Assembly: GCA_013115145.1 (NCBI GenBank)
Contig: JAAPAO010000022.1
Coordinates: 67,444 to 131,443 of the forward strand
Length of the DNA stretch: 64,000 nt
Reading direction: 5' to 3'
From: Perkinsus chesapeaki ATCC PRA-425
Lineage: Eukaryota > Protista > Perkinsozoa
Shown here piece after piece: positions 12,837 through 47,441 of the stretch. Position numbers and translations under genes: made by a program. How positions within the stretch are numbered: position 1 is the stretch's first letter; each line of letters opens with the position of its first letter. Below the pieces are notes generated by a model. It had not been told where the DNA came from, made no database searches, and worked only from the letters and a program-made list of their open reading frames with translations.

Positions 12837-12974
12837 AGTGGTCACACGCAGAAGGAAGGTGCTGTCATCTACCAAACTCATAGAGAAGCTTCGCTCAACG
12901 CAACCGTGATATCCTTTACAGAAATATAACGTGGACAATGCGAGACCATGATAAATGACATGTTACTGTAATGG

Positions 12975-15900
12975 TCAGTGAATGTCCAGGGCTTCCCAAG
13001 GGGCAACATCCTCGACGCCCTGAACGAACTCGCTGGTGAGGTGCCGCCAGATAGCCAGTCGCCAAAGCTGCCATGGTATCTCCTCTAGCTCTGGCGGAAT
13101 CTGTATGTTGTAAGCCTGGAAAAAGGTGGCATAAACATAAAGTAGAAGGGTATATACATGACGCTATTCATTACGGCACATATACAGTGGAGACACAAGG
13201 CTATTAGTGAAGCAAGTGGAGGCTTAATGAGCAAGAGGAATCACACAAGGCAGAACTGCTGTATTGAGAGTGGGCGTTGTAGAAGAAGACGACTAAAGAT
13301 TGAACACACCTCTGTCATCTCAGCTGCCAGCTGTCGTCCAGTGCATTGGCCTCCACCTTTTACTTGGCTTGCTAACTTCTCAAGGGAAATGAAGCTGACA
13401 GAAGTACCCTGTGAAACCTGAAAAGCAAAGGTAGAAGTAGGATGTGGCTACACCGAAGGGTACCTCTTGAGACCATACCGCAATAACATCGGCAATAAGT
13501 CGAATGAAACCATAGTCTCCAATGAAGGTCTTGATACCTTCGAGCGCCAAGGCTTCATCCTGGCATTAGGGAAGGAGGAATTCGAGAAGACGGGACTGCC
13601 AATCACCTCGTCAATGATTCCGTTAGCATCAGTGTCCAGGAAGCTGAATGCTTGAGCAGCAGCTGCTCGTGTGGCTGGTGTGGTAGCTTCCAGATAGTCC
13701 TGAGAATGCTGCCTGGACGTGGCTCGAGCCAGCATACGTACCTCCAAGCCCTGCAGGTCCATACCTTTACCAGGGCCCAACTCCTCTTTCTCTTCCTCCT
13801 TGCCATGTTTGGTCGTGTGCTTAGTCTCCAGGAAGGACCCCCCACTGCCAGGTGAGCTGGTTCCCATTACAGCTTCGAAGCCATGGAATAGCTGCATGAA
13901 CCACAACCTTCGAGACTGGCTGTCATACGCCAGAAGCCTCAGGAGACCGAGCTCATTCGCTGACACCGTGCCTGAGAGGCTCACGCCCACTGGACGCCAG
14001 TCGACGTCCCCGAGCTCACCGTCGCCATCGTGATCGAAGTATTCCTCAAGCAAAGTTCGAGTACCCACAGGGAGAGCGGCCAGCAATGTCGGGACTTCAG
14101 CCGAGTATCGAGATGCCCTTGCCAAAGCCCTCGGAGTTAGCAGTAGAGGAGCATGCCGGAGGGATGGAGGAGCTGCTGCCTCAAGACGAGACCATTGCTG
14201 CCATTCTTCGAGAGAGATCGTCCAGCTGCCATCTAGATCGATAAGGGAGAGCAACTAAAACGTTAGTACTCAGCGCAAGGCAGCGCCAGCTACCTCAAAT
14301 CCCCAACGGTTGGTCGTCCACTCGGTGCCAGCCAGTTCGGTAGGAGTGAGGACACCATCATTGTCGGTATCCAAGGTCCAGAATCTCGCCCGCATAGTAA
14401 CAGCACTGAATGCTGCCGCCAGCATCGGTATAGATAGCCTAGGGCGGATACTAGGAGGGCGATAGCTACATGTAGGTCACCTATCGGTAGACCATAGGCG
14501 CCCCAGTAATATCAAAACATCTATTGGAATACCATCCTTGCCAATATCGAGAAGCGCGTCGAATGCCTGGACCAGAATCACCACAGAACAGACGCGATTC
14601 GCACCTCCTTGGAGAAGGCACCGTCTGGAGCATCAACATCTATACCATAACGAACGAACTCCACGGTATCAATGACACCGTCGCTGTTCTTGTCCATGGA
14701 CCTCAGCGAGCTTTCCACCGACACTCTAGAGCTATCCATCAGTGGCGCCAGGCTTTGCCGTGCAACAGCTACGCGCAGTAACGCAGTCGCGACCTCCTCT
14801 ACAGCAAAAACACTAGGCCTCCTGTCGACAGAGCAGGTAGAGTACTGTTATCAGAGACGAGATAGTCTTTAATAGCATCACGGGTGGCTTTGGGCAAATC
14901 CCTCAGCACTTCTCTGTACGCAGCCATCGGATCGCCAGAGCCACTGTATCGTTCAGCCAACCTGCAACAGTAATCGCATTATCGATAATACTGAGATACT
15001 GTTCAGATACTTCGATGCAAAAAGCGATGCCGCCGGTGGCATGATGTCATCCTCCGAGTGAGCTAGCATTTGCCATTCCCCTCGACCGAGGACGTCTGAT
15101 GGAATGAAGGACATCAACTTGGAGTAGGCTGCCTGAGACGGAAACGGCTGAACAAACCACACAGGAGAAGTGGCTTACACAAACCGAGGAAACAGTGGAG
15201 GTAGAGTTCCTTGAAGGACATCCAAGATCACTCCGGTCTATGCGACCGTCCTTGTTATTGTCCAGCTCAGAGAATCTCATTTCTAGCTCGGCGGATCGTA
15301 ATAGACGCAGCAAGCGGTTGGTCTCTCTAAAGGCACCCCTCGGCCATATATTCGACCAACGGAGCATCGCCTACCGGCCGTCCTTGAACGCCCGATAGAG
15401 CCGGTCAACCAGACGCCAAGATGGTTGGCCTTCATGGCTCTTATGCAGCAGGCTGAGGAGCTACAAAGGGAATATGGTGATTAGAAGAGGAATCACAGAG
15501 ACAGATCACTTCGGAGGTGAAAACACCTCGCGTGCCGAGGCCTCGACCGAACTCCAGCCAAGTAGTCTCGGTCAGCCTCCCCTTAGGGAATGCCAGCTGA
15601 GCCTAGGACGCGAATTGGTAAAGCTGGCTTAGGTTGCCCTACATGAATCGGCAAGACGACTTCAGGATACTCGAGGGGCTCCTCTGATCGAGGAGCACCA
15701 ACTTCGAAGAAGGACCCCTACCAGTAACACTAACGGCAGACAGCATATTCTAGCATACGGTAACAGAGTGCCACAATGATCTCATCCAAGAGCCCTGCTT
15801 CATTATCGATGTGTCAGCTTCAAAGGCCTTCTGCAGTAGATCACCGTAAGTGGTGTCGAATGTAGGCGTGCCATGATCCAGCCCGATGAGTAGCCGAGCC

Positions 15901-18900
15901 AAGACTGCCTCTTCCTCTTCTATATCACCTAGCCATCAACGCCTATAGCAAGAGGCAAATAAAAAGCAACCTACCGTCACCATTGATATCGAAGAACTCG
16001 AACCCTTCAGCTTGGCGGTGTTTATGTCCCTTTCCCTTGTTATGCTCCTTTTTATCTCCTTCGCCTCCTTCATTCTTCAATAGAGAGCTCAGCCTGAGGG
16101 CCAGCTCGGGTAGGCTTGCTGTTTTCAGCCTATCGCGGTGCCTGAGCTTGTCAGTCCCGTCAAGGCCCGAAGCGGCTTCCCCTACTCGAACAACTGGAAA
16201 CGAGTTTCGATAGGAATGCTCCTCACGTACGCCCATTTCTGTAAAGATCTCCGCGAGGCTCCGCTAAGACCACTGGTACCGTGCTCGAGGATCTCCATAA
16301 GCTGACAACGAGAATTTTACGCGCACACTTGACTGGTAAGAGTCACCTTCTCCGAGGGGCTGCCTTCCCAACCTAGTTCCTTTGGAGACAGGACGCCATT
16401 CTTATCAGCATCAAGACTATAGAACAATGGCCCCATAGAAGCAGCGCTGAATAGGGCTGCAGTCTCAGCGAGTATCCTGAGTACAGCGGGAGATGCGCTG
16501 TCGACAGCAAAGCAGGAAGGCTGACAGCTCACCGGGAGCTTCTGAGGTTCATCCACTCGGTGATCACTTCAAGGAGGATCGTGTCGTCTTCGGAAAGCTT
16601 GTCAAAGTTCTGATGAGCCCAGGTCCTTTGAAGCCTTTGAAACTGACGTACCGCGTCGGAGAAGATCCTACTGCCTGCCAAGATAGTCTGGTCAAGCTCC
16701 AAGAATGTGCCTCGGGCTAGATCAGTCGACACAGCACCGTGGCCTGACGGCTCATAGGGCATCAACTCCTCCATGATGAAGGAGAAGTCAGACGTGAGAC
16801 GAACAAGTGCGTACTCGGCCGCGTCGAGTGCACCTACGAGGTTGGATAAAATAGGACTTGATCCTGGTGTCCGTAGTATGTAGACATGCACGCCAGTTGT
16901 TCGAAAGGGGCAGAGTTACGGAAGTGCAACAATACAGAAACTGCTGTTCGGTAGGATAGTTCCGAATCTTGAAACACTTGCAGCGTGTAGATTTTTAATC
17001 AGCATAAGAGCGCGAGGAATCATTCAGTACTGTGTAATTGGTAGGCCACCAATGACAGCTCTCACCATCATCATTCTCGTCAAGGAATGCCACCGTCTGA
17101 TGTATATCCTGCTCAGCTAGCTTTGCCAGCTCCTCCATAATCTCGACAGTAATAAATGCAGTATCCTTCTCAAAAGTCTCCTTTCGCTCATCCACCCTAC
17201 ACTTAGAGCCTCATCGACCACGAAAGCATGTACCGTACTTCCTAGCCAACCACCGGACAACTGCCGGAGTTGCGTCCTCACTGCGACCAGCTAGTCTCTG
17301 CCACTCTGTACGAGACAGTTTGCCGGACCCGTCAGCATCCAGTATCGCCAGGAACTGCCATCCCATTTCTGTAATGCACATTCCAAGACCTTACCCATCT
17401 CTTATCATCCTCGGTAGCGTTGACATCCAGCTCCTCCAAAGTGAGCTCATTATCAGCATCCTTATCAAACTGCATGAACCGATCATGCAAAACAAGCGCT
17501 TCCACGAATCGATATATCAGGGGCACATTTCTAAAGGAGTTCATCTTCGACCGGTGGAACGGGTAAAGCGGTTACGATGAGTCCTTTGTGGCCATATGAA
17601 GCATCTCGTACCGCTGCAGCTGGGCCCCTTCAGCCCTTTCGGCCGATAGATGCTTCAGTACCTGATCGTGAACTCGTCCACCACTTCGATAGGAATAATG
17701 GAGTATGAGTGGCGGCTGATAGAATAACACGTCATCCAAGCCTGATTAGTGCCGTGTAGCATTATCATAGCTTTCTTGCCGATCAAAAGCCTCACCCTTC
17801 TCGAGAATAGTCTTTGGTACGAGCCGCTGCTAGCTCGCATAGCCTGCAGCTCTGCGGTAGACAGACTGCCATCTCCATCCAGATCCGCAAGGTAGGCAGA
17901 CACTGACATATAGGGCTAAAATAACACCACTAACAACTGGTCACGGCTGGTATCGGCTACCCCAGACGGTGTTGCAATTTCCAAAAGTGACGGCGAGGGT
18001 TCCTAAGGAATTACACGACTGCTGTGCTCCAGGCCGTCTCGGCTCCTACCGTCAATTGAAGCCAGGACATGTCGAATACCTTACGTTGGCTGACATCGAT
18101 ATTAGCATCAAAGCCTTTCTCTAATATCTCAGAGAACTTCTCCCTATACGAGGCACCATCTGATTTGCCATGCATCAGCCGGCCAAGGCGGCCCTCTCGA
18201 AAGCTAACTCTTCCTGAGCAATACCCTCACTCCATAGCCGAGTGTCCCGCCTACCTTTCTTCTGGGAATCGGTGGCATTAGAGCTCTCTGGAGAGGGCTC
18301 GTTCTGATCCCCAGCTGCCTCAGCTGTGGAGTTGTTCCCCGCTGACTCGCCCTGGCTTCCATCTTCACTAAGACTGATAATGTCGGGCTGGCTGAGACAG
18401 GTTTCAATCTGAATTTCGTGGCGTGTGACTCTCACTCCATAACATCCATTCTTGTTTTGCGTGGTGCCGAATTAGCGTAGACCCAGTCCTGGAGATCCTT
18501 CCGAGATACTCCGACTGCTGCCTTCGGCGGCTCACTCCGAGTTAGCTCCTCGAATAGCTGACAAGCGCCAACAGCAACCGGAGCTCGACTGCACTTCCAG
18601 ACTCACTTGCTTAGCGTCATCATCCCAACCAAGCTCGTCCATCGACAGCACACCATTCCTGTTGGTGTCTGCAGTATAAAAGAAGGTGTCCATATTGAGG
18701 GCCGAGAACACCGCTGCTGCTTGCCGCAGAGCCCTAGAGGTCATCTCATTGATAAGGTACAGGAAGATACTTTTTGTTCCGAAGCTCCATCCAGCGGCTT
18801 ATAACATTTAAAGGTAGCAGCTGCCTCTCTGCGTCGGAGATGAGCTCGAATAACTGAAACTCAATGGCAGCAAAACCGCTGCAACCAGCGCCATGGTGCC

Positions 18901-21900
18901 CACCTTTGGCTTGAAGAATTTATCAGACGCTCCGATCCGTTTGCCGACCTTCTTGAACTCAGCCTCGGTGAGATCTTCAGAGATTGCTGGGCTCACTGGT
19001 GCCCCTCTGTGAGGCAGCACAGCCTCCGACACGTGACGCATGTCACTAAGAAGCCGCAGACGGGGAAACTCTCGGAAGGATAGCTCCCCTGAAGAAGAGA
19101 CAGCCATGCAATACGATAACTCGCGCTGAGAAGTTGAAAATGAAAAGATGCATGTAGAGACAAAGTGGGCTGGCAAGCGGAACTCATTCCAATGACTGCA
19201 AAACCTTAAGCTCCTGATATCTGATAACTATCCCACTCGGACTAGACAAGAGCACATATTTCGTAGAGCAGGTATGGTGAGCCCCGAGCATACCATCGCC
19301 ATCGGTGTCGATGAAGGCTTTAACGGTCTTCACTTCATCTCCAGGAAGTCCATCCAACTGCTTCAATACAGCGGATGAGACCTTTGCCGAGTCCAAGTCG
19401 AAATCGCCATCACGTTCTGGTAACCTGGTCAAGCCACTCCATGAAGTTGTTACGTCAGCCAAGCCCTTACTTGCCAGCAAGCCAGACAGCGGCATCGGGA
19501 GCCGCGTCGTAGGAGTAGCCGGCCAAGGACATCCACTCGGACGTAGAGATAGTCGTGCTGTTGTCAACATCGAGCAGTTCAATCACCTACGTGGCCTTGA
19601 ACGGCCATTAGTGTTCGGAGGAGCTCACCCAGTCAACATCCTCGGAGGAGAGGTCCAGGCCATTAAGCTCCTCATGGCTGAGGTCTTCGCTCTCGTCGTG
19701 ATCCAAGTCGACGAATTTGGCGTGCAGCTGCAGCGCTTCGATGACACCATGGATGGCTTCGACTGCCCTGACGAGCACCAGCGTTCAGAGATGCCCCGAG
19801 AGCTAAAGCCCACCGATGGTCTTTGGTACAGCGGTGAAGCTCCTCGAAGGCGTCCAAGTCAATCACGCCGCCTTTTCCAGCCCCAAGGTCCTTAAAGACC
19901 TGCGAGACGAGTCCGATGAAGGAGGGGCGTGGAAGGCACACTTCAGAGGAGAACACTCTAGGAGTCGCTCCCATGGCGTCCCTTAGGTCATCGAACTCTG
20001 GCGCTGACAGGCGGTGATCGCTATTATAGTCTGCTCGGTAGCCTGACAGTGTCCTATAGACCTGATTCCCAAATAACCGGAGTCCCAAGGCTGCAAGCGG
20101 TGACCTTAGGCTGTTGGCACTCTTCTGAGCGCATTTGGAGCAGCGCCGATGGGCTTGAGAACTAACAAAGGAGATGGTACGCTTGGCGTGGCCCTGAGCA
20201 ATAGACCTCCTGCTTGGTTTCCATCACCACTCGGAAGCCTTTATGCATCATAGCGTCCAAGACCTCCATGGATTCACTCTGGCCCAACAGACGCAACAGG
20301 CCCACTTCGTCCACATTCAGAGTCCCTACCAGGATGTGTCCGACGCCTCCCTTGCCAAGCTCACCATCATCATTGGTGTCGAAGACCTCTAGGATGGCAT
20401 TGCGCTCCTCTAAAGATGCTTCTTCAATTGCCTTACTGGCCGCCAGACGGAGGTCCGATGCGCCAGCTTCCTCAACGACGCTAAAAGCACACGGTGGGCC
20501 ATCCGACGGTTCGAGGTAAGGCCTACTCAAGGGCAAAAATCTTAACGGTGCCCGGGGCAGAGAAGGCGAAAGTGAGCTGTTGGAGACTGAAGCGGTCGAT
20601 GTAGCTGATGCCATCGGTACCATTGATACCAATGGCACTGAACACCTGAATGCTTAATGGGACGGGGCAATCACGGCTTGTCCATCCGTGCTACGGCACT
20701 ATAGGGAATCAAAAGTCAATTTGCAGTTGAGAGCATACGGGACTAGCTGACCTCGGTGGGGCGGAGCCGGGGGAAGTCCGTGTGGAAGTCGGCGAACTCG
20801 TCCATGGTTATCCTGCCCGTCAGGTCAAAGTCCTGACTTGAAAAGAATGCCTCGCAGTTAATAGCACTGAACACTCTCAACAGCTGATTCACGCGCCTGA
20901 AAATACCGTAATGCTCGTCATCTTCGAACACTCTACCTTTCGGCCACGGCCCTCAACCACACTCTAATAATTTCGGGAGGTATAACAGTATCGATCGAGG
21001 CCTGGCCGATAGGAGCCAATGCCGTGAAGGACTGGTAGGGGGGCTAGTTCCTTAGAAACAGCGGGGGAATGTACCTTCTCGGTGAACGCCGCGTGGTTCG
21101 CCCTCGTCTTCGAGGAGTAGGCCAGGAACCGTCGTCGGTCCCATGGTGTGCTGAGCGACAACCCATCAGTGTTGTAAAGGGCGCGAGGCATAAATTCATA
21201 AACGATCTCCGGGGTGGCGAGGAACCGCAGCAGGATGAGCTCATGGTCGTCCAGGGAGCCTTAATGCAAAGCCATGTCCGGCAGGGCTGTAATTCAGATA
21301 CTGACCATCTCCGTTGAAGTCTAAGAGCTGGGAGACCTCCGCTTGCTGGAAGGCAGTAAGGTCCTCCAGCTCCTTCAAGACAACACCTGCGCTCCATTCG
21401 AGAGTCTCCGCTATTCTGAGGAACATCTGGCACACTAGCGCGCCTCAAGCGGCCACCTTCTGGCGAGCAGCACTGCGCTTGGTGGGGCGGCCTCGGTGTG
21501 CAGACCTGCTAGGACTTGGACCTCCGACAGCTCTAGAGACTTCGAAGAGTCCCGATCCAATGTCTTGAACACCTACAAAGGCGTCGGAGTTTACAAACTC
21601 CGAGAGAGCCGCTCACCCAGACTCTGTCCGAGTCCAGACCGATCTCATCCCAGCTGATCTTCCCATCGCCGTTCTTGTCCATGGCATGGAAGTTGGCCTC
21701 GAGAACAAAGCTGTCGAAGATGAGATAGATCCTCCGAAGGTTCCTAGATGACCATACGGAGTAGTAGATGAGATCATGACTCCACCTCATGTCCTTGGAT
21801 GCGTAGTGAAGTTGATCAGCTACAGAAACGTCCAGCATGCCGGAGTCGTCTTCGGCAGTGAAAAGATCGAAAACCTGCCCAGGCCGGCGAGCAACACGTG

Positions 21901-24900
21901 ACCCTAGCGGCCTCTACTTCCTCCGAGAATGCTCTCTCTGGGGCCCTTAGAGTAGTGCCATAATCTCTAAAGGCATCGTAGGGAATCATCGTTCCCAGCG
22001 CCAAGCTACCAATGGAATAAGGGGATGGAATCCGGGCCTCCGGAACGACCTACGAATCAAAGACAATTCTAGGTTTGTCCTTCGTCCCACCTCCTCTGAG
22101 CCGAGTTGGATGAAGGCCTCAGGCACGCCATCCTCGTCCTCGTGCTCCTCGATAACGCCTTCCGGCAACACTTGCTCATCATCGGCAGTATCTTCACGTT
22201 GACCGTGCTTCCCGTCGGCAGCATCCTCAGGTTGACCGTGCTCCTCGTGAGAAGCATCCTCAGGTTGACCGTGCTTCCCGTCGGAAGCATCCTCAGGTTG
22301 ACCGTGCTCCTCGTGAGAAGCATCCTCAGGATGACCGTGCTCCTCGTCCTCTATAACACCGTCAGCTTCGGGCTCTACGGTCTTTACTAAAGGCTCTTCC
22401 AACAGGCCCGTATCGTTGTCGAGAGACATCGGCCGCCAGCTAAGCCTGGGCCTTCGACCGTATCCGAGGAGGACCTCAGTGGCGATGAGATCGGCCATTT
22501 CAGTGCCCCCTCCAATCGCCCGAAGGATGCTGTAGTCTGCATCTGTCGGCCGACCTGATGCACACATCACGAACTTCCACACCGTGATCTTCAAACCATT
22601 CCCAAGAGTATCCAAGGCTCTGTCGATGACTCTCATGTAGGTGGGTGGCAACTCGGTAAGCCTCTTTTGCGCCGCGGCAATGAAGGGTCCTCCGGGTATT
22701 GGGAAAGGCCCATCTTCGAACGCTTCAGTAAGCCTGATCAGTACGGGGAATCCACTGCTCAGCTGGTACTATCCAGCCCACCACAGTGCAAAGCGCTTCA
22801 CCACTATAGGCGCTCTGTTGATGATAACCATTCTCTGCCACTCGTACCGAGACAGATAACCATCGCGGTTGGTGTCAAGGTAGTGGAAGAGCTGACCAGA
22901 GAAGGCTTCAAGTGGACGCCGGGAGGATTCGAGACCCACCGCGCGCCCGGACAAGGTGCTCCAACCAATCTCATCAATAGAGAGTTCGAAGCTTCTAAAG
23001 TTGTCCAGTTGCGAGAATCTGCTCTCGAGAGCGAGCGAGTCAGAAACGAGCCGAGGGAAGTCATCCCGCTCGTCCATGGAGTCGAGCAACCTGACGCAGC
23101 CGACGGTCGAAAGTGGCAGTAGCCGAAATGGCGCACTCCCCCTTGGCAACCGTTTGGAAAATGTCATCGATCTCGTGGACCTTTATGTGCTCTGGATCAG
23201 CCTCGGTGGCGAAGAAGGAAAACGACTGGGGCAAATAGTAACAGACGGGCCGCTGTGTGAGGTGGTGATACTTTGTCTGTGAAGACGAAGGCCGGGGCTC
23301 TGATGGTATTCCCAAACTTGGTCCATTCGGTGAGGTTGACAAGCCCATCGTTGTTCTCATCCATCAAAGTATATATATCCCCCGGAGCATCCCGGAACAA
23401 CTGAATAATAACTTCGGCGTGTGTAGTGGACAAGATGGACACCTTGATCAGGGCCAGCTTGGCCGGTGCTCTCATTATCATCAACCAGGCATCTAGAGCC
23501 GAGCTCAAACCCTCACGGATGGGCTCGGAGGTGTCCAAAACTACATAAGATTATTGATGAGAAATCGGAGACCTCTTACGGCCACGAAGATGCTCCACTC
23601 CATCCTGGAGACGATGAAAGGCAGTGAAGTCGATGTCATCACCGAGTAGACCCTCTCGTACAAAGGCGCCAAAAACCACCCTGTCGTGCATGGGTGCTTC
23701 AACCTCGTAAACCTGGAACGACGAAGGATTGAACTGGTCAACACTGAAGGGGAGGGATACCTCCTCCATAAAAGAGCGTATCTCCTCTACTTTATGAATC
23801 GTTGAGTTATCAACCCACTGCATGAGCCCACCCAGGCACTCTCCAGGGGGTATCTGACACCTCTAGCTGTACCACTGTGGCCTGTGCCTGCTTACGAAGC
23901 CTCTCATGCCTATAATGAACTCAGCATCTGAAGGCGTCGGCTCTCGCCCCTTGAATTCGTTTGCCTCGTAACTGTCCTCATCCCGGTGGCCGCCCCTCCC
24001 TCAACGGCTTACATCTCATGTAGCGTCTGTTGTCTTAAGGCATGCGAGTAGCTCCCCAGCGACAGTCCATCGCTGCCGCCGGCGTCAAGGGAAGTTTCGT
24101 GGCTGAACAACACCATGACCAACCTTCCGTACAGCGTCTTCTTGCCTGAGCCGGAAGGTAGCAGCAACCTTGAGAGATGCTGCCCCTCCACGCCGTGTAT
24201 GCGACAGGGCCGGGGACATTGGTATGACAACTCTATCTGGTGGATGTGGCGCTGGTGGACTGTAGACCAGTCGTGGAGCGAAGGGGTGTATGTTGAACAA
24301 TGGGTCATAGTACGGCCTGAGGTGCGGTATCTGTGAGATGGCACGATCGGCTCACCCTGTCGGAGCCGTAGTGTTGGTACAGTTCAAGCAGTTAGTTATA
24401 ACATCACTGCCATCCCTCAGTCTGTAGATGTGTCTCCTCGATGGCAGCACCCTCGGCCCTGGTTCAGCCTGGGGTGCCCCATGTGGAGGATCAAGCCTGT
24501 CAGCCGCTGCGGCTTCACTTCCAAGAGTGTTGCCAAGTTTCTCAGGCGCCAGTGTCGTTGTTGTTGTTACTTCTTCCTCTATCTCAGCGTCTGGTAGATT
24601 GTCGTTGACCTCCTCCTCAGGCTCCCCCTCCGGCAGAGTTTCATTGACATCTTCCACCACACCATCCTCCGCTTCTCCCTTGGGAACTCCGTCATCATCC
24701 TCGGCAACTCCGTCCTCACTCGCATCCTGGACCTCACCGGCCTCATTCTCAGCCTCGGCGGCCCCGTCCTCTTCCTCAGCCACACCATCCTCAAGACCAG
24801 GGCCAAAGTCCGGCTCAGGAGGCTCTACCTCGACGACTGGGTCAAACTCATCCTCAACTGGGAACCCATCTGACTCTATCTCAGCATCAGTAATAGGATT

Positions 24901-25897: not shown

Positions 25898-25931
<34 letters not shown>

Positions 25932-27969: not shown

Positions 27970-28173
27970 TTGCTCGTCATTTCCCGAGATTGACTGTTAA
28001 CTTGAACACTGGAAGTGAACCGTCTATTGTAGGTTAATAATCATACAACAGCAGCAGTAGCATTGGACAACATGCGCTGGCCCATTCGGGCAGCAACCCT
28101 CACATCGGTGATAGCTGGAAAGAAGCGGCATTGGTGATACTAATTAATATCCATCAATGTCCGAAGGAACGCG

Positions 28174-31100: not shown

Positions 31101-34100
31101 TCGCCAAGAGATCCTCTTCTGAGATGTCGTCACTGAGCGAGTGGCCGATGACCTTCTCGAAGCTCTCCGACGGGTATTCCTACGAATGCAGTACAGCCAG
31201 CAGCACCCCAAGTATTCACCCCTTACGTGCATCGATATGCTCCATGTGTTATTCTCCCTACTCTGTGGGCCACCCTGCAGGTCCGGACTATACTCGTCGT
31301 CCTTCTCATCCCAGTCCTCCGTAACAAGTTCCTCATCCTGTGTTGCATCCCTGGCTGAGTCATCCACAGACTTCATATCTCCATCATTCATCTCCTCATG
31401 TATATCCCCCTCATCAGGCCAGCTGTCATCTCCATGCGGTCGAACATCTCGGGTAGTAGAAGTCTCCTCGGCCTCCGAAGCCTCCCCGTATCCGCCATCT
31501 TGGCCTTCCTCCTTCATTTGCTCATCATCTCGCTTCTTCCTAGAGTGCTTCCTATCATGCTCCTTCTCCTCCTCAATAGTCTCTCCATACTTTGGCATCC
31601 TGTCCTTCCCAGTATCCTTCATGTCCATAGTGTCTCCATATTGTTCCTCGTCATGCATATCTCTCACGGCAGTAGTAGCATCTCTATATTGGTTCCTCTC
31701 TCCATCTTCTCTCTCTATAGTCTCCCTATACTGCTCATCCTCCCCTCCATCTTCTCTCTCTATAGTCTCCCTATACCCTTCATCCTTCGACTCCTCCTCC
31801 CCCCTGTACCGTTGGTGCTCAGTTCCCTTCTGCCCGGCCCCTCCGTGTCGGTGCCCCCTATCCTTAGTGCCCCTGTACCCTTCATCCTCGTGCATTTCCC
31901 CCACCTCTTTGCTAGCGGTATCCTGATATCCGTTCCCCTGTCCTCGTTCTCTTTCTATTGTCTCTGTATAATCTTCATGCTGCTCCGGTTCCTCCTCCTT
32001 CGTATGGTCCTTCCCTTCCCCCTTCTTCCTCATCGTCTCATATCCTCCCCCACCGCTCGCCAACGACCCCTCGTGTCCTTCAACAAGACCAACTTCTCTT
32101 CTCCCCTCCTCCGACATAACCTCCCTATGTATCTCAGTCGCCCCAATAATATCCGATGCCTGCGAGGCCACACTTCCCTCTGGCGCCTTACCCGAGGCCA
32201 TCCCGTCGACCTCCTTTGCAGCCGCTGCCTCCTCCTTGTGCTTCTTCGTCTTCTTTTTCTTTGAATGTTTCTTCTTTTTCCCCTCATGATCGAACTTTCG
32301 GACCTGCTGCATCGTCAGACCCTAAAAATAACGAATACCGACGGCGGAGCGACGCAGAGCCTCTCACCCCTCCGCCTCCGCTAAACTTGTCAGCAGTGCC
32401 GTTACCATCACCGCCTCGAGTTTGATAAACCTGCCGAGGGAAATATTCTCTGAGAAGTGCGCGAGGAGATGCAAGTATTACCGAGTCGACCTCGAGGAAG
32501 GCTGGCTCGAGTCGTTCAACCGTCGGCATCTGCAATATGCTTGTCACAGTATGGTTACTTTTCCCCCTCACCTTTCGAACCGTCTCCAGGAAGCTGCTCC
32601 CAGCAGCGCTGGTGATGGCCGAGAAGCCATGGTGGAGGAGACCTTCATAGACCAACATTAACTCCGCGTGATGGATGGCTCGGAGACTGAGAATCTCCTC
32701 ATCGCTCAACTTGCCTACGAAAGTACCATGTTGCCATCTCAAGTAGTATCATCAAAATTCTCAGTTTCAAAAAATTTTCCCCATAATTTTATTAAATTTT
32801 CCCCATAATTTTACTAAATTTCCCCCATAAATTTTACTAAATTTTCCCCATAATTTTACTAAATTTTCCCCATAATTTTACTAAATTTTCCCCATAATTT
32901 TACTAAATTTTCCCCATAATTTTACTAAATTTTCCCCATAACTTTACTAAATTTTCCTCGTTGTTTTCTTAACCCCCCCTAACTGCTATCGAAACCTAAC
33001 CGTCCAGTAGCCAAGGCTTCACCGCTCCAATCCCGCCGACGTCTTCTGCTCACCATCATTGTCCAAATCCAAGGCATGACGAATAGTTGCCTTTGTCCTC
33101 TCAGATTTGATCCTTTCCATTACGACATTGAACTCCTTAACGAACTTAGATGGGCTGGAATCCTCCCGAGGGATACTACCGAGAAAGCTACCCGACATAG
33201 GCATATGATGCTCACCTCAACGCCAGCAGCTTCACAGACGCCGGCACAGTAAAGAGGTAAGAGAATCTTTGAAGGTCTTTCCTAGTAATTCCTAGTCCAC
33301 CTTCACCGACCACATCCAACACCTACAGTGCAGATGAGTGGATTCACACGCTTTGCAGTCCCCACTGTGTTGAGTCTGACCATCGGGAAACTGCCGAGCC
33401 ATTGGCCAAGCTCGTCCCCGGTCAGATGACCATCATTGTTCTTGTCGAAGTTAGAAAAGAAGGCATCGGTATTAACCGCCGAGAACACCGCAAGAAGCCT
33501 CTTCAACCGCCTGAGTCACGCGCCACAAAATTCTACAATAACTTCGCCAGCCAGTGCCGGCTGCTCACCTGTGCTTAACTGCGTTCATCCAAGCCTCCAC
33601 CGATGCCTTCGGTATTTGGCCGTTCCAGAAGAGTGCTAGGGATTGGAAGCTCTGACAACACATGCTAGCTCCTCTTACTTCTACTGGTAGTAGTAGTAGC
33701 TTATCATTCGATATGAGGATAGGGCATATACTGTATGTTTCTGTGCGTGCCAGCTTCGACTTCTACGACATTGCAGTGTGATTATTTTACTCTCCTCGAT
33801 GCGCTTTAATTATTCCGTGGATTAGCACCTTCGGATTCTAAGCGCGGAAGAGATGCACCAAAAATGCGCATGAAACGTCCCCAGTGGCAAAGTATTCCAT
33901 CTCCTTTCTAGATACATAGCCTCCATCAACATTCACTCTACTCTCCCACTCGGAATCTTGGCTGTAATCTTCAAAGGTAATAATTGTGTGTTTTGATATT
34001 AGTCACTCGACAAACAAGTGCGAGTCTTCGAACGGGCGCGCCCATCAATCCCCCGCTTTTTCTAGTAGTTGATGAGTACCCACCATACCCATGCGGCTCA

Positions 34101-37100
34101 CCTGCTTGGAAAAGGCACGGTGATTGGCTTGCAGTTCCGTTGCCATTTTAGCAAAGTCCTCCTCCGACCAATGAGAAGGGATTTCGTCCATCTTGTCCAT
34201 GGCGTAGGAGGACTGTGGGAGGTACTTAGCCAATACGTGAGGCATCGACAGGACTCTTAACATGGCTATCTCATGGTGGTCAATATAACCTATGCAAGAT
34301 GTAAGGCCAATAAGGCTCCTCGAAATACTCTTATAATTGCTAATATAAGATATACCACACAATGAGCTGCTAGTCTAATAATCATAATGATGATATAATG
34401 TCGTAATTATACGACGTATTATTCATATAAGGTATATAATAACAACCAAACCACTACATCCTTATTATCAACATATAACCCTCTTGTGGGGAGAGTGGTA
34501 TGGTATTATATATCACAAGTACTCACCGCCAAAAAGCATGTTGATGCATTTGCCAATCAACAACTTAAACGGTAAATTTCCTTTAACCAGCAGCAGAGTA
34601 GTGTAACCTTTAATTGGTTCTACGAATATGCTACGAAAAGCTTAAGCGGTAAAAGCAGCCTTCGCCATCAGCTTACCGTCTCCATCAAAGTCCAAGAATT
34701 CTCCAATCTCAACACTCTCAAAGCCAGTGTATTCCTCCATTGATTTCATCACAGCTGCCACATACTCCTCTATAGGTCCATCAGCCTTCTGTTGTACCCT
34801 AACAACACCACCTTCCCGATTCACACGGCAATACGGCGCCCCACTTCTGTGCCAGCATGATGGCGCTGGCTGGAGCTGCCTCCTCGCTGAAGCCTGCTAA
34901 TCTTTGGAGCTCTCCCAGCGTTATAGAGTTGGAGCCGTCGAAATCGACTACTGTGAAAACCTGAAGTATCCAAGAGAGTATCTGTGTACTAGAACGCCTT
35001 CCGGAAAGAGCAGCAGTGTGCACTTCATTAAGTAGTGTAAACGTGCGAGGCGGCTTGCTCCTATTTCGGCACCAAAGCTTCCCACTGTGCACCTTAGAAT
35101 TCTACAGCAGTCGCTCTGTAACAAGACTTGCCACGAAAAAGATGAGCAGTCAAGGCGCAGGGGGGAGATCCATGCGGATGAGGGCACCGCAACGGCGGTG
35201 GTTACCATTACTCACCGCTTTGTCTGATGGCTTCAAAGCTAGCTCTTGGAAAGATATACCTCCGTCCCTATTGGTGTCGAACTCCTTGAACCGATTATGC
35301 AAGACGAGGGAATCCAGAATTAGGCTGATGCGACGATGGTTCCTAACAGGAATGCAGAGGAGGAAGCATGCGTCAATGTGAGGAGAGAATCTCAATAGTA
35401 ATGCAGAGGAGGAAGCATGCGTCAACGTGAGGAGAGAATCTCAATGGTGGGGATGACCTACCGCCACCGTTCAGTCATATCTAGGATACGACTGATGATG
35501 AGATGTTCACAAGCAACATACCAAGCATGAGGGGGGTTGGTATTGGAGGAGCACATTATTGAGCTATCACTACGTACTTGTCTATTCCCCCGATACAGGA
35601 ATGACAATTATTTGTTATGATGCCAGCAGATACTGTACAAGTTAGCCATACAGTGTGCAATAGGCGGTGAAGTAGAATTAGACAGAGCAGTACGACAGTT
35701 GAGAGATACCTCATGTCCTTGGAGGCAGCATGAAGGACATCGCTCTCGCTGGAATCGAGATCCTCAGCGTCCTTGTCGGCAGGATATTCGACGAGGTCAT
35801 ATGCCTGCTCGAGAAGGCTGTCATAAAGAAAGCGAGGGAGAGTGGCTTACCGTTCTGGAGAAAACAGTGGCAGGGGCGGAGATGGACTTGCCGAGATCGG
35901 CAAAGTCATGGGATGTAACTCTTGTTGATGGAGATAGCTTCCTTAGGCTGAACTCCAAAGGCAGCCGGCTCCACTGACAAAGACAGGAAGCTGCTGCTGC
36001 TGTTAGTGTGATACTAGCGTGGTACTTAAGAGGCTATAGCCGTCTCCTGGCTAATATACCCGTCATCCATATAAACAGCTTATATTGCAAATGTAAAACG
36101 GTCGCGATATATTATGTACGTAGTTGAATTAGTATATTATATACTGTTATTATAAGGTAATATCAATTACTATCAGCCGAATTACCGTTCTACTGAAGAG
36201 CTATCAAGCATCAACGTGCGGGGTAAATAATCACCAAAGACAATATTTATGACTCATCAGGGCATCATGGGGCCCGAATCAACAACGTCCACAAATGGCA
36301 ATATGGTCGAAACGAACCACCGTCGTTCGCACTACGACTGTTGCGACTCCCTACTTGATCAGATTCCTGAATAAAGGAGCCAAGTTGATGATGGCCTCCT
36401 CTATGGTGTTTCCTTCTCCTATTCTCCCCCTCAGGATTCGGTGAGTAGACCTCCCCTCCTGGAGCCTGCTGTCCTGCCTCCACCTCGGGCAAGGGCGATA
36501 TAACTCCTCGGCCCTGCTGGGCAGCACTTAATGCGTTGGACGTCAAACGGGGCCGTCGACCGTAGCCGAGATAGAACTCAGTGGCAACTAGGTTATTCAT
36601 CTCATTTCCGCCAGCCATCGCTCTCAATAGACCGTAGTCACCATCTGAGGGCTCACCTACGGAAGGGGACACTGACAGACTACACAGCGGAGCGCTGGAG
36701 GGCCGATATAACTGTCACGGACATTTCTAAGCTACCAAGGGGCGTGGTGGTGAAAGGGATCGAGAACGTGTCTCTGTGGTCATAAGCCCAGAAAGAATTC
36801 AAGGCCCACCTGCTCCTAGTGAGTCCAAAGCTTGCTTGATGACCGGTACGTATCTTTCCGGCATAACAGCCAGCCGATCCTTGGCCTGCGTCACGAATGG
36901 TTCCACAGAGTAAGGCAGTAGATTGTCCCCAATCATATGAGCGATCCTGAGGGGCTACCAGTATACCACCAAATGGGCAAGCCCAAACCCACCAGAGAGC
37001 AAAGCGTCTAACAATGAGCGGCGCTCGATGAATCATCACAAGCCGTTGCCACTCGTAGCGGGACAGCACACCATCTCTGTTGGAATCAAGGTAGAAGAAG

Positions 37101-40100
37101 AGCTGATAGGAGGAGACTTGTGACGTGACGCCACCGCCGACATCTGAGACATTACCGCCTCTCCAACAGGGCCCTTCCAGCCTATGTCCTCCAAAGAGAG
37201 GTCATTATGGCGACCACCATCAAGGTCAGAGAATCTGCTCTCTAAAGTAAGCGAGTCCATCACCAACTGAACGGCAGTGTCAGCTCCTCTGGTCGATGAA
37301 CTCAGCCTGGCAGGCAAGTAGTCCGAAGGTGGGCAAAGGGCGGCGGCGGTCTACCTCCCCTGCGCTATGGTGCGATAGAGCTCTTCAAAGTCCTGGACGC
37401 GAATCTCCTGTTCTTGTTCATCAGACACTAATTCGTTAAATGCCTGATAAGAGCCATTAACCACACCGAGGGGCTATATCATCTCATGTGGTGCCCATAC
37501 ATATTCACTACTAGCTGTAATGTTATAATGCAGAAAACGCCAGTGTATAGTTGATGATAGATATATTATACATTCCGGGCTTACCGAAAATTTGTGTTTT
37601 TTGAAAGGAGAATTCCCCAGGAAGGCTAATGTGGTGTTCATCGATCCTGACGACCAGTTGTTGTTATCTTATAGAACACGTAAATATATAATAAATATAT
37701 ATTATTAATAGGCATACTGTATTCTATATTGTAAGAGTAACATAGTAAATAGTTGATGAAGATTATAATTACTGATACAGATGGTTAGGTGGTTATAATA
37801 ATACATATCATTATTATATCTCATATATAGTGACATCTTATTATATACTTCGGGACTCCCGAGAAAAAGTGGTTTTAACTAAATTCTTCAGGAGGAGGGA
37901 TATTTTAGCAACACAGGCCAAATGTTAAGTCCCTTCAAGGCCAGTGACGCCTCCCTCCTCTCTCCTCACCTCCTTATTAAATACAAAAGCTGGAGCTGCA
38001 ATGGTCCGACCAAAAGTCATGAACTCATCAAATGAGATGAGACCATCGCCATTGGTGTCCAGCAAAGCGTATATCTCAGAAGGAGCTTCTCGGAACAACT
38101 GAAGGCAACCGATCTGGACCGGAATCGACCGCTATGATGATGATGCTCACCGATACTAATGTGTGCTTGTCGGGGGCGGTCAAAAGGAGGATCCAGGAGT
38201 CCAGTATAGTGGCGACTCCGGCACGGAAGGAATCAAACCGAGGAAAAACTGACATGACCCGGGATCGACCTGGCGTCCTCAGGAGACCTACTTTCGCTGA
38301 CGTGCTTGATACCGCTGCGGAGGCCCCTCATGGTCCTAATAGGAGTTATGTCGCCCTCGAACAGACCGTCCTTCACAAACCGAGCGAATGCTCTTGTGTT
38401 CGCTGTTGTAGGGTACTTGCTGTACAGCTGCAAACGGACATAGCCATCATCGCGCCGTCTCCACGTACATGCTCCATCTTCTCCCTTAACGCCTCCACTG
38501 TCGACAGAGCCGTCTTATCCACCCAGGTGAGGGCGGCCTCCAATGCAGGCTCGGGGAACTGAACGGGGGAGCTAGATGCTGAGGGACAGATGACAGGCTC
38601 ACCCGACCGATGCGGCCAACGGTGAAGTCGACCTCTTGCGGAGCTAAGACATTCTTAAACTGAACGTGATAGGGTATGTCATGGTGCTGGTGGTAGCTGA
38701 CCAGCAAATCGGATGAGCCCGACAATACCGCTTTGGTGCTGACCTCTCAATCGTGTGCTGCACCACCGCCGGGCTGCTGCTGCCTGGCTGCCCCACTGTC
38801 ATCGAGGAGACCGTCGTCCTCTTGTGACTGAGAAGGGCACCCAATGCAAAAGCACTGCGCCTTTCAATGGTGGCCTTACTCCGAGACTCCCGGCCAAGGA
38901 GAGTGCTGTGTGGTGGTCACCACAGAAACCCTACTGTGAGGTGGACGGCCAGCAATACGAAATGGCGACCCCACCGCTGACGGCATCGGCAGGATCATAG
39001 CGCTCGGTGGCCTCGGGGCAGGCGGATGGAATATGATCCTTGGTTGGAAGGGATGAGGGGCAAATAAAGGAGCATAGTGGACAGCCCTAACAAGAGCAAC
39101 CCGCTGCTGAACCACAGTAGCCAGCAGCACTGGCTTACCCTGTAACGTGAGTTATGATTGGTGGGCTGAAGAGACGTTGACCAGACAGCAGTCTGTATGG
39201 CACTATAGGAGACTTCATCTCCCCCATGCCACTCGCCACACCCTTCAGCTCGCCTGCTCTCACCCTGGGGACAAACGGTGTCGGCTGATGCTCCTCTGGT
39301 TCAGCTTCTCTATGACCATCAATATTATTCGGCGACCAAGGCTGGCCAGGTATCACCGGGCTCTCCGGATGGTCCATATGCTCCTCCTCGGGATGGCCGC
39401 CTCCCTCCTCCTCAGGTACTCCCCCGATATCCTCTTTGGAGCCTTCTTCCTCCCCCTCAGGTCCTGCTGCCCCTCCCTCCATATCAGTCATGGCGTCCGG
39501 TACGACCGGATTGGTATCGCTCTTGGTGTCAGGGGACTCCTTACCAAATACAGCATCCAGCACCTTATCCTCTGGGCTCTCATCCTCCTCCTCGGAGGTC
39601 CCTGGTTCGATTCCCCCCGACGGCTCTTTATCATCAATCTCTCCCCCCGAAGGCTCCTCCCCCGCGACCGGGTTAGTGTCATCTCCAGGCGGCGACCCGA
39701 ATTCCTCCTCACCCTCCTCTTCAGGTATCCCTTCATCCCCATCCAGCATGCCCATCTCCACCATGGCCGCTGGCCGCACCTCCAGCAAGCTGGTTGCGCT
39801 CTCCTTCTTGTCATCACCGTAATAAGTCTTAACTATCTCCCCCAGCAGCGCGCTCTGTATTGCTTCTCTGTCCCACGCTATCTCCGGTGGCACCAACGCC
39901 TCATGTGGGACAGCCGTTTGTGGCAGCGCCCCCAGCCCATGGCAGTAGGAGTAGAGGACCTGCCCGACAACTGGAAGCATCACAGCTTCACGTCCTCGGC
40001 CACCTACCCGCTTGGTCGTATAAGTGACCCCACTCAGGCTGCGAACATCGCTCACTCGGACGAAGGTCTGCATGCCCGCCGAGGCGAATCTCCTTTCAAG

Positions 40101-42305
40101 GTCTCGAACGTCAGCCAGGACGTCGAGGTGCGGTCGAAGTCCACCACCATTGGCGTCGGTATAGATGGTGAAACTGACACCAGAGATCCTCGGCAGACCT
40201 TTTCCATTTCGACCAACCTGACGAAGCTGCCCGCGAAGCTGTGCGCTATGATGGTTCCTCTGGCACTTGAAGATACCTGCATATCCTCGCCAGTGACACC
40301 TAAGATAGCCGATAGCCGCCCGGAAGTGGTGATAGTAGACAGGCACTTACCATTCCTAAAACTGAGGTCCAAGTTGTCCTTGGTGACCTTCGACATGGCC
40401 TGCCGGAGGACCAAGTTTACCTGTCGACCAACAAGCCGTTAGAGGACACCAACAAGATAAACGTAATTGCGGCCAATTCCCAGACTTATACATTAGGCAT
40501 ACCCTACAACGGTTAGATAAGGGAATCCTAGTAACCTGCCACGGGGAGGCTAGGACACTGATACCGGATATCGGTAGCTCGATTCTAGTATGTTTGCCGC
40601 CGCCGTCCGACAGCTTTCCCGACAATAAGTCGCTGGGGCCATCAACGATCACCGCCGCTTACTCTATCTCTGAACTTCTGAGTGTTCTCTGCGTTGAGGA
40701 TCTCTATCTCTCCCTCGACCTCCATAGGAGAGTTGTCCAGTGGGCATCCTCGGAACACTTGAAGATCGAAGGATGCAGTCTGTCCAGCTGATGACATCAG
40801 CAAAGCCTTCGCCAAGCATCTCTGAGACATCCGAACTATCCAACCACACCTGCCATCAAATGCTGCCCACATGAAGGGCCGCGTGGGCCGCTCGAGCAGT
40901 CTCTTCATGCTGCTCTGGAGTGAGACCACCAACTGGTACGTGGAGAGGCTCCGTCTAATGGAGAGAAATGGTGAAGTAAGAAAAGTGGTGAAGGTCACTT
41001 ACCGAGAAGACCAGCTCGGCGAACAGACCATCCTTAGCAACATCGTATATCACCGTATAGACTGGGTTAAAGCCGGCTGCAGTGAGGGCGTGTACCCTAA
41101 TAAAATGGTAATTAGCTCCTCCTCCTCCCCACCATCGGCATAGCTCTACATGATATCCTTGATCTTATCCATAGAAGGATGCTGGACATCCTGCTCTAGG
41201 AGCACCGGGTAAGGGAAACGTACTTTACCGATAACAGCCTGAAAAAGACGACGGTGATGCTTTTCGAGACAGCTTGCACTATGGTAGCTGCACCTATCAT
41301 ATAAGCTGCTGCCGGTCTGGTAAGCATATAAAGTAACCAGACCCAGAGGCTGAACTATGTACGGTTACCACTGTACAACCTACACCCCCTTTAAAGCAGA
41401 AGACTGACAGCTTTTACCGCAAACATCTACAAGGTGGGACACTTTTATCATAGGATAGTGTTGCACTGTGAGTGTTAGAACAAAGAAGGAATCCTTAAAA
41501 GGGAACTCAGTCTCAGTATCGAGCAATACAACTGCACAGAGCGAACCCCTTGAGCGGCCCGAGTCGTATGAAAGGCTCATATCGACCAAATCCCTCCTCA
41601 GGCCCTACCGCAGCGGTTGTTGTTGGTCGTTGTTGTTGTGCCGCTGACATGACCAGCGTATTGGTCGACATGGCGAAGGACCCAGCTAATTCGTAGAAGT
41701 GGCTGGGCTGTAGGCTGTCCAATAGATGGGAGCACTGAGAATAACATCCTCACGTCACTGCGCCACAAAATTAATCCTTCTAACTCCACAAGCTGATGAA
41801 GTATACACTTGAACGCTTCGCTCGGCACACGCTCCTTCCGCCGCTGTCACCACCTAAAAGAGAGGTATTGGCAATGAAGTGATCTATTTTATAATATGAA
41901 AACGAGTAGAAGAAATGTTTTACTACGAATAAAAACCCAGCGACTTATTCTACAAACCATAGAAGTTTCCCAGTGGTACGAAAACAACAACGTCATCATC
42001 ATCAATGGGAGCCACGAGCAATAGACCACTCGCCGTTGCGGTTGCTGTACCAAATGACTTTTGGTAACAAGTAGAGTGGGAAGTGTAGACGCTGCAGAGG
42101 ACTTCACTCCTCCACCTCTTCCACTTACATGCATAAGATCAACAACACCAACCCCACCAGCGCTCATATAAGCCTCGAATGGCCGGCAAACTCGACCACC
42201 CATCGACGAGCGGCAATCAGCAGACAGAAGACCCTTTTTAGTAGCATCCACCAAGGTGGTGGTGGCTAACCCCAGCACGGAACAGCAGTAGCCTATCAAT
42301 CTCAT
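28174..42305 (-). CDS. Giant multi-exon EF-hand repeat protein, paralogue X (at least 12 EF-hand-like loops), with predicted signal peptide
   Basis: Start MRLIGYCCSVLGLATTTLVDA at 42305. Loops include DTNGDGLISFDE, DSNRDGVLSRYE, DTNRDGGISFQE, DFDGSNSITLGE, DKNNDGHLTGDE, DQDHDGKITVKE, DVNGDGLLTKEE and DLDRSGSIGRPE. Acidic exons lie at about 39135-39800 and 31050-32300. The C-terminus has EVPWALWRLIVWRHLT. Confidence 0.8.
32772..32957. repeat. Intronic 22-bp AT-rich minisatellite (aaattttccccataattttact), about 8 copies
   Basis: Read directly; lies between the DLDNDG exon and the GKLSDEE exon of gene X. Confidence 0.95.
35351..35448. repeat. 49-bp tandem duplication at an intron 3' end in gene X
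   Basis: aatgcagaggaggaagcatgcgtcaa(t/c)gtgaggagagaatctcaat occurs twice. Confidence 0.9.
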
Positions 42306-46532: not shown

Positions 46533-46604
46533 CGACATGAATTGACAGCATGGTATTCTTTATAGTGCGACATGAATTGACAGCATGGTATCCTTTATAG
46601 TGCG
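46533..46604. repeat. 35-bp tandem duplication
   Basis: cgacatgaattgacagcatggtat(t/c)ctttatagtg occurs twice. Confidence 0.9.
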
Positions 46605-47302: not shown

Positions 47303-47441
47303 TTCTATAATAAAGGGGAGAGTGAATAGTGGAATGCCTTCTATAATACAGGGGAGAGTGAATAGTGGAATGCCTTCTATAATACAGGGGAGAGTGAATA
47401 GTGGAATGCCTTCTATAGTAAAGGGGAAAGTGAATAGTGGA
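47303..47441. repeat. 36-bp tandem repeat, about 3.8 copies (ttctataataaaggggagagtgaatagtggaatgcc)
   Basis: Contiguous copies with no spacers. Confidence 0.95.

Follow-up and report, generated by a model that had tools for sequence, protein, structure and literature searches.

Two paralogous intron-rich genes, X and Y, lie head to tail within the window, which is the whole 64,000-nt stretch of Perkinsus chesapeaki DNA that was analysed. Both are on the minus strand, as are all the features described for them below. Judged from their sequences they are functional, tandemly duplicated genes, each predicted to encode a giant multi-EF-hand protein. They are almost certainly real coding genes, and their products probably bind calcium. 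The explanation taken as a whole, that of tandem functional genes encoding a secreted calcium-binding matrix or sink, has in our estimation an even chance of being correct.

Gene models and exon structure

Gene X extends from its ATG at 27849 to a stop codon at 12975–12977 (12975–27849), with 74 predicted exons encoding ~3,690 aa and a pI of ~4.5. Gene Y (28182–42305) begins with an ATG at 42305 and comprises ~55–60 exons encoding ~2,700–2,800 aa with a pI of 5.0. The original prediction placed the outer limits of the pair at 12975 and 42305; these are exact, being the last base of the X stop codon and the A of the Y ATG, and its expectation of several thousand residues per protein agrees with the splice models. 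Exons 2 and 3 of Y were placed by homology at ~41785–41853 and ~41606–41734. The 3′ end of Y is uncertain, with the last conserved exon at 28407–28496 and the modelled stop near 28182, and the spacer that separates the two genes (27850–28181 as modelled, up to the X ATG) is ~330–560 bp depending upon where Y truly stops.

The termini of X were located separately, and the remainder of the gene was taken from a splice-aware dynamic-programming model. The median intron in the splice models is 45 nt, and the exons are ~120 nt in length. The intron penalty was tuned on the X–Y alignment score, a low penalty having over-split the exons, and small spurious exons of Y were deleted after comparison with L001, a contig from a related organism that contains an orthologue of Y. 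A long-intron splice model skipped most of the exons and was dropped; no repeats common to the long introns were found. The assembly was confirmed between 12900 and 18890, where public-run DNA assemblies show no differences.

The collinearity of the two genes exon by exon, as originally proposed, is borne out by two kinds of comparison. ORFs of X matched Y collinearly by tblastn, and the spliced sequences of X and Y align over segments of 344 aa (36% identity, E = 3e-41), 1,019 aa (30%, E = 7e-119) and 592 aa (27.5%, E = 1e-49). Homologous X and Y exons are identical in length in 13 of 18 cases, the length differences in the remaining five being multiples of three.

It might be argued that X and Y are decaying pseudogenes, or many small independent genes misjoined by the splice model. 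Transcripts of the locus are absent from the only two RNA-labelled runs (both tiny), and since the model picks introns that avoid stop codons, the open frame alone is weak proof. Several properties of the models argue against this reading. Exon lengths and phases are kept among X, Y and L001, each of which was modelled separately. In each gene the first exon alone has an ATG with a signal-peptide-like segment downstream of it. Moreover, splicing creates EF-hand loops: seven strict loops in X and Y, and two in the orthologue, are formed only across predicted junctions, and in these the junction always falls after the first base of the codon for Gly 6.

The N-terminal region

Starting at the N-terminus, exon 1 of X (27691–27849) encodes a signal-peptide-like start containing the hydrophobic segment VMLSWMVPAVAAL, followed by a conserved C-x8-C motif. 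The hydrophobic 10-mer has a KD of 1.87, a value matched by no more than the top 0.3% of internal windows. A further ATG lies upstream in the same frame of X, and a start at that position would bury the hydrophobic segment. Exon 1 of Y (42129–42305) has the signal-peptide-like segment MRLIGYCCSVLGLATTTLVDA, again followed by the C-x8-C motif, and here the ATG is the first of the open frame. Thus in X, Y and the orthologue an N-terminal hydrophobic segment precedes a conserved cysteine motif (C-x8-C, then C...CGC). These putative signal peptides were judged by a heuristic of simple hydrophobicity and conservation. By that measure X has a signal-peptide-like start, in line with the earlier claim of a signal peptide, and Y has one likewise, which goes beyond that claim.

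No transmembrane segment is evident, with no 19-residue window reaching a KD of 1.6, and neither model has a KDEL or HDEL ending (X terminates in ALDIH). For giant extracellular proteins both cysteines (~14 per protein) and N-glycosylation sequons are few. On balance X and Y probably enter the secretory route; given the lack of a transmembrane segment and of a KDEL or HDEL ending, they would then pass onward as soluble cargo, bound for a secretory organelle, for the wall or for the medium.

The rest of the X N-terminal domain is encoded by ten short exons (26173–27690), reaching to ~aa 405, and is 36–37% identical to that of Y over ~300–340 aa. This domain of ~380 aa appears to match no recognised family. 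Single-exon queries of Pfam with the N-terminal exons of X, Y and L001 (E up to 10) gave nothing credible, nor did comparison with PDB profiles and the ESM Atlas exon by exon. Replication-protein neighbours in the ESM Atlas were of low recognition and were rejected as chance. Structure prediction for a fragment of the domain gave a pLDDT of 39, which is unusable.

The acidic insert, proline-rich motif and C-terminal tail

From the N-terminal domain the chain continues as a long acidic insert. In X this is encoded by a low-complexity exon (24356–26124) of ~589 aa (aa 408–996) that is 30% D+E and 11% P, with a net charge of −142; no homologues were found in a word-index search with the 662-aa X ORF. 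The corresponding exon of Y (39139–39959) holds the end of the N-terminal domain together with the acidic insert. The inserts are 230–590 aa in length and are read as disordered, and the net charge of the whole of X is ~−350. There follows a proline-rich motif, which in X (24192–24316) reads Y-x-PLF-xx-HPF-x-PR ... PPAPHPP. The Y-x-PLF-xx-HPF-x-PR motif is common to X, Y (38982–39086) and L001 (7530–7727 of that contig).

Following the EF-hand array the chain ends in a tryptophan-rich, amphipathic tail. In X this comprises three exons (12978–13559), with the W-rich motif IPWQLWRLAIWRHL at the end (exon 12978–13115), the counterpart of which in Y is the exon at 28407–28496. All the predicted parts were found in the order expected: N-terminal domain, acidic insert, proline-rich motif, EF-hand array and W-rich C-terminal motif.

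The EF-hand array

In X the array (13607–23400) begins with a canonical loop at 23361 and continues as nine units of five exons, with a total of 17 strict and 21 relaxed loops. The Y array (28826–38098) has five units, with 10 strict and 11 relaxed loops. Within each unit exon A encodes a helix, exons B and C each encode an EF-hand, and exons D and E jointly hold a split EF loop. Each unit thus has three EF-hand-like helix-loop-helix motifs, and there are ~15–27 EF-hands per protein.

The five-exon repeating unit, together with an internal duplication in X that is absent from Y, adds to the earlier account. On unit-by-unit alignment scores units 4–5 and 6–7 of X (16347–19899) are mutual best matches, with no counterpart in Y. 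Where X carries the extra units Y has a specific charged exon (31227–32321) of 365 aa, rich in K, E, D, R and G.

Strict loops were defined by PROSITE PS00018 (12 residues, with ligands at positions 1, 3, 5 and 12, glycine at 6 and a hydrophobic residue at 8). X has 17, Y 10 and the orthologue fragment 7, compared with shuffle means of 0.04, 0.02 and 0.01 respectively (two thousand composition-preserving shuffles for X and Y). The EF-hand_1, 5, 6, 7 and 8 families were the sole Pfam families matched on the 68 exons searched. The ORF at 13451–14254 scored 28.8 bits for EF-hand_6 (curated cut-off 25) and 26.0 bits for EF-hand_5 (curated cut-off 25.9), and 22772–23182 scored 26.4 bits for EF-hand_6. 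An AlphaFold2 model of one B–C pair, of low confidence (pLDDT 55), forms a helix-loop-strand-helix twice, and its best 50 Foldseek matches in the PDB are all EF-hand proteins, at E of at least 0.25 and TM of at most 0.36. Paired loops are located 26–29 residues apart.

Conservation in the orthologue

The exons of the Y orthologue are conserved while its introns are not. Well-predicted exons of L001 are 65–83% identical without frame-breaking gaps, compared with ~40% identity in the introns. Over 1,722 aligned columns Y and the orthologue are 59.5% identical, with pN = 0.20, pS = 0.73 and omega ~0.09. Within the EF loops the ligand positions 1, 3, 5 and 12 agree in all 28 comparisons between Y and the orthologue, against 22 of 42 for the remaining positions.

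On these measures the predicted build of X and Y is kept by purifying selection. With pN far under pS, ligand positions invariant and exon phases conserved, many small genes or pseudogenes, an outcome that would have refuted the original prediction, are very improbable. The canonical loops and the conservation of their ligands in the orthologue make calcium binding likely, as had been anticipated.

Comparison with known proteins

With single-exon queries no described family beyond the EF-hand superfamily appears to match X or Y, in keeping with the first assessment, and such searches found no relatives beyond this lineage. A sensitive search of 1.84 billion protein representatives with a conserved non-EF piece of X returned one match, a 93-aa ORF. 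Word-index protein searches (the 260-aa and 662-aa X ORFs, and P0001) gave nothing new, the protein-collection searches being limited by a length window and exon-only queries. Conserved motifs from the mid region and N-terminal domain found no relatives in metagenomes, and nothing on this family came to light in the literature searched on Perkinsus with EF-hand or calcium-binding proteomics. Introns of ~45 nt and exons of ~120 nt shatter ORF-based calls, so that the public protein collections hold a single 93-aa fragment.

The best sequence match among solved structures is CCDC81B of Tetrahymena (8v3l, chain A), a microtubule inner protein of 1,535 aa with multiple EF-hands; six weak EF stretches align, with a summed E of 1.4e-6. 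This protein begins with a CCDC81 domain and is located inside ciliary doublet microtubules (bioRxiv 10.1101/2023.11.28.569001). That the best match should be an axonemal protein, not a secreted one, counts against secretion of X and Y. Like CCDC81B and CFAP115, X and Y are large alveolate proteins with many EF-hand pairs, and with loops ending in E/D-W. They could on this basis be cytosolic scaffolds of the cytoskeleton or flagellum, associated with the zoospore axoneme or with microtubules, the hydrophobic segment then being no signal peptide. Their low cysteine content is consistent with this, and expression at the zoospore stage would fit their absence from the available RNA runs. However, the match to CCDC81B is limited to generic EF loops, and single-exon Pfam searches of the 68 exons, the sensitivity of which is limited, detected neither the CCDC81 (HU-like) domain nor any other domain apart from EF-hands. 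Unlike CCDC81B, X and Y have a signal-peptide-like start with a cysteine cluster, conserved in both proteins and the orthologue, and their long, disordered acidic inserts are poorly suited to a microtubule lumen. We therefore regard a scaffold as unlikely.

CREC proteins (reticulocalbin, calumenin, Cab45 and PfERC) resemble X and Y in their tandem EF-hands and acidic composition, and they begin with a signal peptide, to which the start of X and Y, as judged by the heuristic above, may correspond. They are ~300–400 aa in length with no other domain, and many have HDEL-like endings. Whereas they have six or seven EF-hands, X and Y have ~15–27, are 7–10 times longer and carry in addition the N-terminal domain, acidic inserts, proline-rich motif and W-rich tail. 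No sequence relationship specific to CREC was detected. X and Y share a strongly acidic character with high-capacity calcium stores of the calsequestrin type, and their extended D/E-rich segments might likewise bind Ca2+ at low affinity but in large amounts. Calsequestrin is built from thioredoxin-like domains and has no EF-hands, and no thioredoxin-like Pfam match was found on the 68 exons searched. EF-hand pairs also function extracellularly in the EC domain of SPARC/BM-40 and in FSTL1, each of which has one such pair in a cysteine-rich multidomain protein. Both came up as weak neighbours by fold and in the ESM Atlas, at levels that are not significant (E ~1, TM ~0.3).

X and Y might then be giant analogues of CREC proteins or calsequestrin, resident within the lumen of the ER, Golgi, vacuole or an acidocalcisome-like compartment as a calcium buffer kept inside the cell. 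The signal-peptide-like start, the acidity and the EF-hands fit such a buffer equally, and CREC proteins provide precedent as EF-hand arrays in the secretory pathway, with an alveolate member in Plasmodium PfERC (PMC4798761, PMC7042697). Against this, X and Y lack both a membrane anchor and the retrieval signal of many CREC proteins, and their size and additional N-terminal domain are unparalleled in that family. The spacing of their paired loops also departs from the ~36 residues of classical EF-hand pairs. A resident buffer is accordingly rather improbable.

Discussion

We prefer a reading in which X and Y are secreted. The proteins would enter the ER, and their numerous EF-hands and highly acidic inserts would bind many Ca2+ ions. 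Calumenin, which is small, compacts on binding Ca2+ (PMC4798761), and by analogy calcium may switch extended X and Y chains into a compact or cross-linked form. The outcome would be a calcium-dependent matrix or a high-capacity calcium sink, a role that we assign tentatively, at somewhat below an even chance.

A more specific proposal is speculative and on present evidence doubtful. X and Y might represent a class of giant exported polymers, peculiar to perkinsids, that act as calcium switches, with EF-hands strung between acidic spacers. Kept calcium-poor in a secretory compartment, they would compact or cross-link at the millimolar Ca2+ of sea water or host fluid, building or discharging a structure, for example the wall or plug of the zoosporangium or the content of an extrusome-like organelle. 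Assembly or anchoring would fall to the two ends of the chain, the N-terminal domain and the Trp-rich tail.

The locus warns against ORF-based or prokaryote-style gene calling for genes of this kind, and the double-unit duplication in X is a clean example of expansion by blocks of exons. Almost all EF-hand proteins act as small sensors in the cytosol, and those of the secretory pathway are few and small. If the signal peptide holds, a conserved pair of EF-hand arrays of 2,700–3,700 aa would be a new use of the motif. X and Y are candidates for the calcium-dependent steps by which a commercially important lineage of shellfish parasites forms its wall, discharges organelles or stores calcium.

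Gene structures of X and Y

The locus at 12975-42305 is eukaryotic and rich in introns, with both of the paralogous giant multi-EF-hand protein genes, X and Y, on the minus strand. Comparison by tblastn of stop-to-stop ORFs of the first half with the second half gave collinear minus-strand matches running from 13023/28496 to 27529/41734. The RNA runs searched contained no sequence from the locus, so exons were predicted from the DNA, using a splice-aware dynamic-programming model based upon a codon log-odds score, GT-AG introns, and site matrices and a length prior that were trained iteratively; the model is blind to homology and to EF-hands. At convergence the predicted introns had a median length of 45 nt. 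Gene X extends from an ATG at 27849 to a stop at 12975-12977, with 74 predicted exons (median 121 nt) encoding about 3,690 aa, and 95% of its predicted introns are 36-60 nt. Gene Y begins at 42305, the first ATG of the open frame, and has about 55-60 predicted exons, giving about 2,700-2,800 aa once exons 2-3 are corrected by homology. The last conserved exon of Y is 28407-28496, and the 3′ end of the model past this exon is uncertain. The limits of the original prediction, 12975 and 42305, match the X stop and the Y ATG exactly.

Four kinds of evidence agree with the splice model. The spliced products of X and Y align over 1,019 aa at 30% (E 7e-119), far better than the raw ORFs, with further alignments of 344 aa (36%, E 3e-41) and 592 aa (27.5%, E 1e-49). 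Homologous exons have equal length in 13 of 18 pairs, and in 5 of 18 the difference is a multiple of three. Strict EF-hand loops are formed only across predicted junctions in seven cases in X and Y and in two in the orthologue of Y from a related organism, and wherever an intron splits a loop, it follows the first base of the codon for Gly-6. The fourth is provided by the exons of L001, the contig carrying the orthologue. The original observation of a tandem pair of giant multi-EF-hand genes is confirmed and extended.

About a dozen predicted introns (including 22892-22939, 13972-14019, 13700-13741, 23713-23760 and 23401-23442) are stop-free with a length that is a multiple of three. Their retention would preserve the frame, and intron-retention isoforms are possible; 22892-22939 resembles an EF-hand entering helix. 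A 653-codon open frame at 11004-12962 (minus strand), with a putative ATG near 12881 and lying ~94 nt downstream of the X stop, matches no Pfam family and probably represents a distinct neighbour gene packed closely against X. A Mon2-like gene lies at 52868-60178 (plus strand), with DCB (E 1.4e-23) and Mon2_C (E 6.8e-22) domains on large ORFs.

Architecture of the proteins

Starting at the N-terminus, X, Y and the orthologue have a hydrophobic segment (KD10 hydropathy 1.9-2.55, which ranks in the top 0.3% of these proteins' windows). Next come a cluster of conserved cysteines (C-x8-C followed by C...CGC) and an N-terminal domain (about 380 aa) that is encoded by ten short exons. The chain continues as an acidic insert rich in proline and glycine (in X 589 aa, 30% D+E, net charge -142; shorter in Y), the motif Y-x-PLF-xx-HPF-x-PR...PPAP and the EF-hand array, and terminates in a tail with the end motif (I/V)PW-x-LWRL-xx-WRHL.

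The array comprises repeats of a five-exon unit, A to E. Exon A encodes a helix (27-31 aa), B an EF-hand, and C an EF-hand with a frequent E-W ending; D terminates in DxDGD and E finishes that loop. Two subtypes, alpha and beta, alternate, such that X comprises unit 1 plus four alpha-beta pairs and Y unit 1 plus two pairs. The best-matching units are X1-Y1, X2-Y2, X3-Y3, X8-Y4 and X9-Y5. X4/X6 and X5/X7 are mutual best matches, indicating an internal double-unit duplication in X; at the corresponding site Y has a 365-aa charged exon instead.

The strict PROSITE PS00018 pattern finds 17 loops in X, 10 in Y and 7 in the orthologue fragment, where shuffled sequences average 0.04, 0.02 and 0.01 respectively; relaxed criteria give 21 in X and 11 in Y. 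The curated cut-offs of the Pfam EF-hand models are reached. Loop starts within a B-C pair are only 26-29 residues apart, whereas in classical EF-hand pairs the spacing is roughly 36. An AlphaFold2 model of one B-C pair has the expected topology, yet a pLDDT of just 55; the top 50 Foldseek matches are all EF-hand proteins, none significant. Model and matches are weakly consistent with an EF-hand fold.

Conservation and selection

L001, a 12.6-kb contig from another sample, was reached through the sole match in a sensitive search of a 1.84-billion-protein collection. Its Y orthologue adjoins the same upstream gene as in the window (44168-50032, minus strand), which is syntenic with L001 1142-4453, in blocks of 67-83% nucleotide identity. 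Between Y and the orthologue, identity is 65-83% in well-predicted exons, with no frame-breaking gaps, and about 40% in introns, where indels are of any length. Six or seven long 'introns' of Y in the window contain 150-500 nt insertions missing from L001, a comparison that led to removal of several spurious mini-exons from the Y model.

Seven Y introns with insertions of about 150-500 nt (37444-37969, 35974-36354, 34290-34676, 33607-34101, 40421-40662, 36657-36809 and about 41239-41605) are about 40-60 nt in L001; these insertions have no repeats in common, and share none with sequence elsewhere in the window. Two long introns flank the Y unit 2 B exon in the window and in L001 alike (35343-35709, 367 nt, and 34961-35215, 255 nt; in L001 9965-10341, 377 nt, and 10469-10690, 222 nt), and their X paralogues are 42 and 44 nt.

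Y and the independently built L001 model share 59.5% identity across 1,722 aligned columns. Aligned codons, 1,515 in number, give a pN of 0.20 and a pS of 0.73 (omega roughly 0.09), with synonymous sites close to saturation. Constraint is strongest in the stretch that begins with the proline-rich motif and takes in unit 1, where identity is 80% and omega about 0.05. On these values X and Y are very unlikely to be pseudogenes, and a modelling artefact is also very unlikely. The L001-Y comparison places the X/Y duplication before the split of the two organisms. In the seven loops common to Y and the orthologue, the ligands at positions 1, 3, 5 and 12 agree in 28/28 cases, the residues at the remaining positions in only 22/42, the pattern expected were calcium binding itself selected.

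Relationship to known families

EF-hands are the sole Pfam families matched by 68 X exons. No other family was recognised in Pfam, PDB profiles or the ESM Atlas with single-exon queries; the N-terminal exons gave no match in these three, and a C-terminal ORF found only generic EF-hand clusters in the ESM Atlas. Single-exon searches of a representative library, word indexes and JGI metagenomes found no relatives outside this lineage. These blanks are weak evidence, because the queries were single exons, the protein length limits of the searches exclude annotated proteins of giant size, and collections built from ORFs break up genes of this kind. The family belongs to the EF-hand superfamily, in which it is a new variant in architecture, so far encountered only in this lineage.

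Among solved structures, the top sequence match is to CCDC81B of Tetrahymena, a microtubule inner protein of 1,535 aa with multiple EF-hands; the E of 1.4e-6 is a sum over six EF stretches, each of them weak. Calcineurin-B-like and neuronal calcium-sensor proteins come next. Two other readings are less probable than the matrix or sink mechanism described below. X and Y could be cytosolic or flagellar EF-hand scaffolds akin to CCDC81B, and their hydrophobic N-terminus would then not be a signal peptide. Alternatively, they might be resident luminal store buffers, resembling calsequestrin or the small secretory-pathway CREC proteins, one of which has been described in an alveolate (PMC7042697); KDEL and HDEL are absent from the C-termini of the predicted proteins.

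A possible calcium-dependent function

The original interpretation, a calcium store or calcium-triggered matrix, wall or extrusome component, is borne out in part: X and Y are two conserved coding genes, whose predicted products are giant acidic proteins with many selectively maintained canonical calcium loops. In the mechanism proposed, the proteins would enter the ER through a signal peptide and be carried onward as soluble cargo; no 19-residue window of either predicted protein has a hydropathy of KD >= 1.6. The EF-hands and acidic inserts may bind calcium multivalently. Calumenin, a small secretory EF-hand protein, is described as compacting on calcium binding (PMC4798761), and on this model the chain would be compacted or cross-linked, and would serve as a calcium-dependent matrix or as a calcium sink of high capacity.
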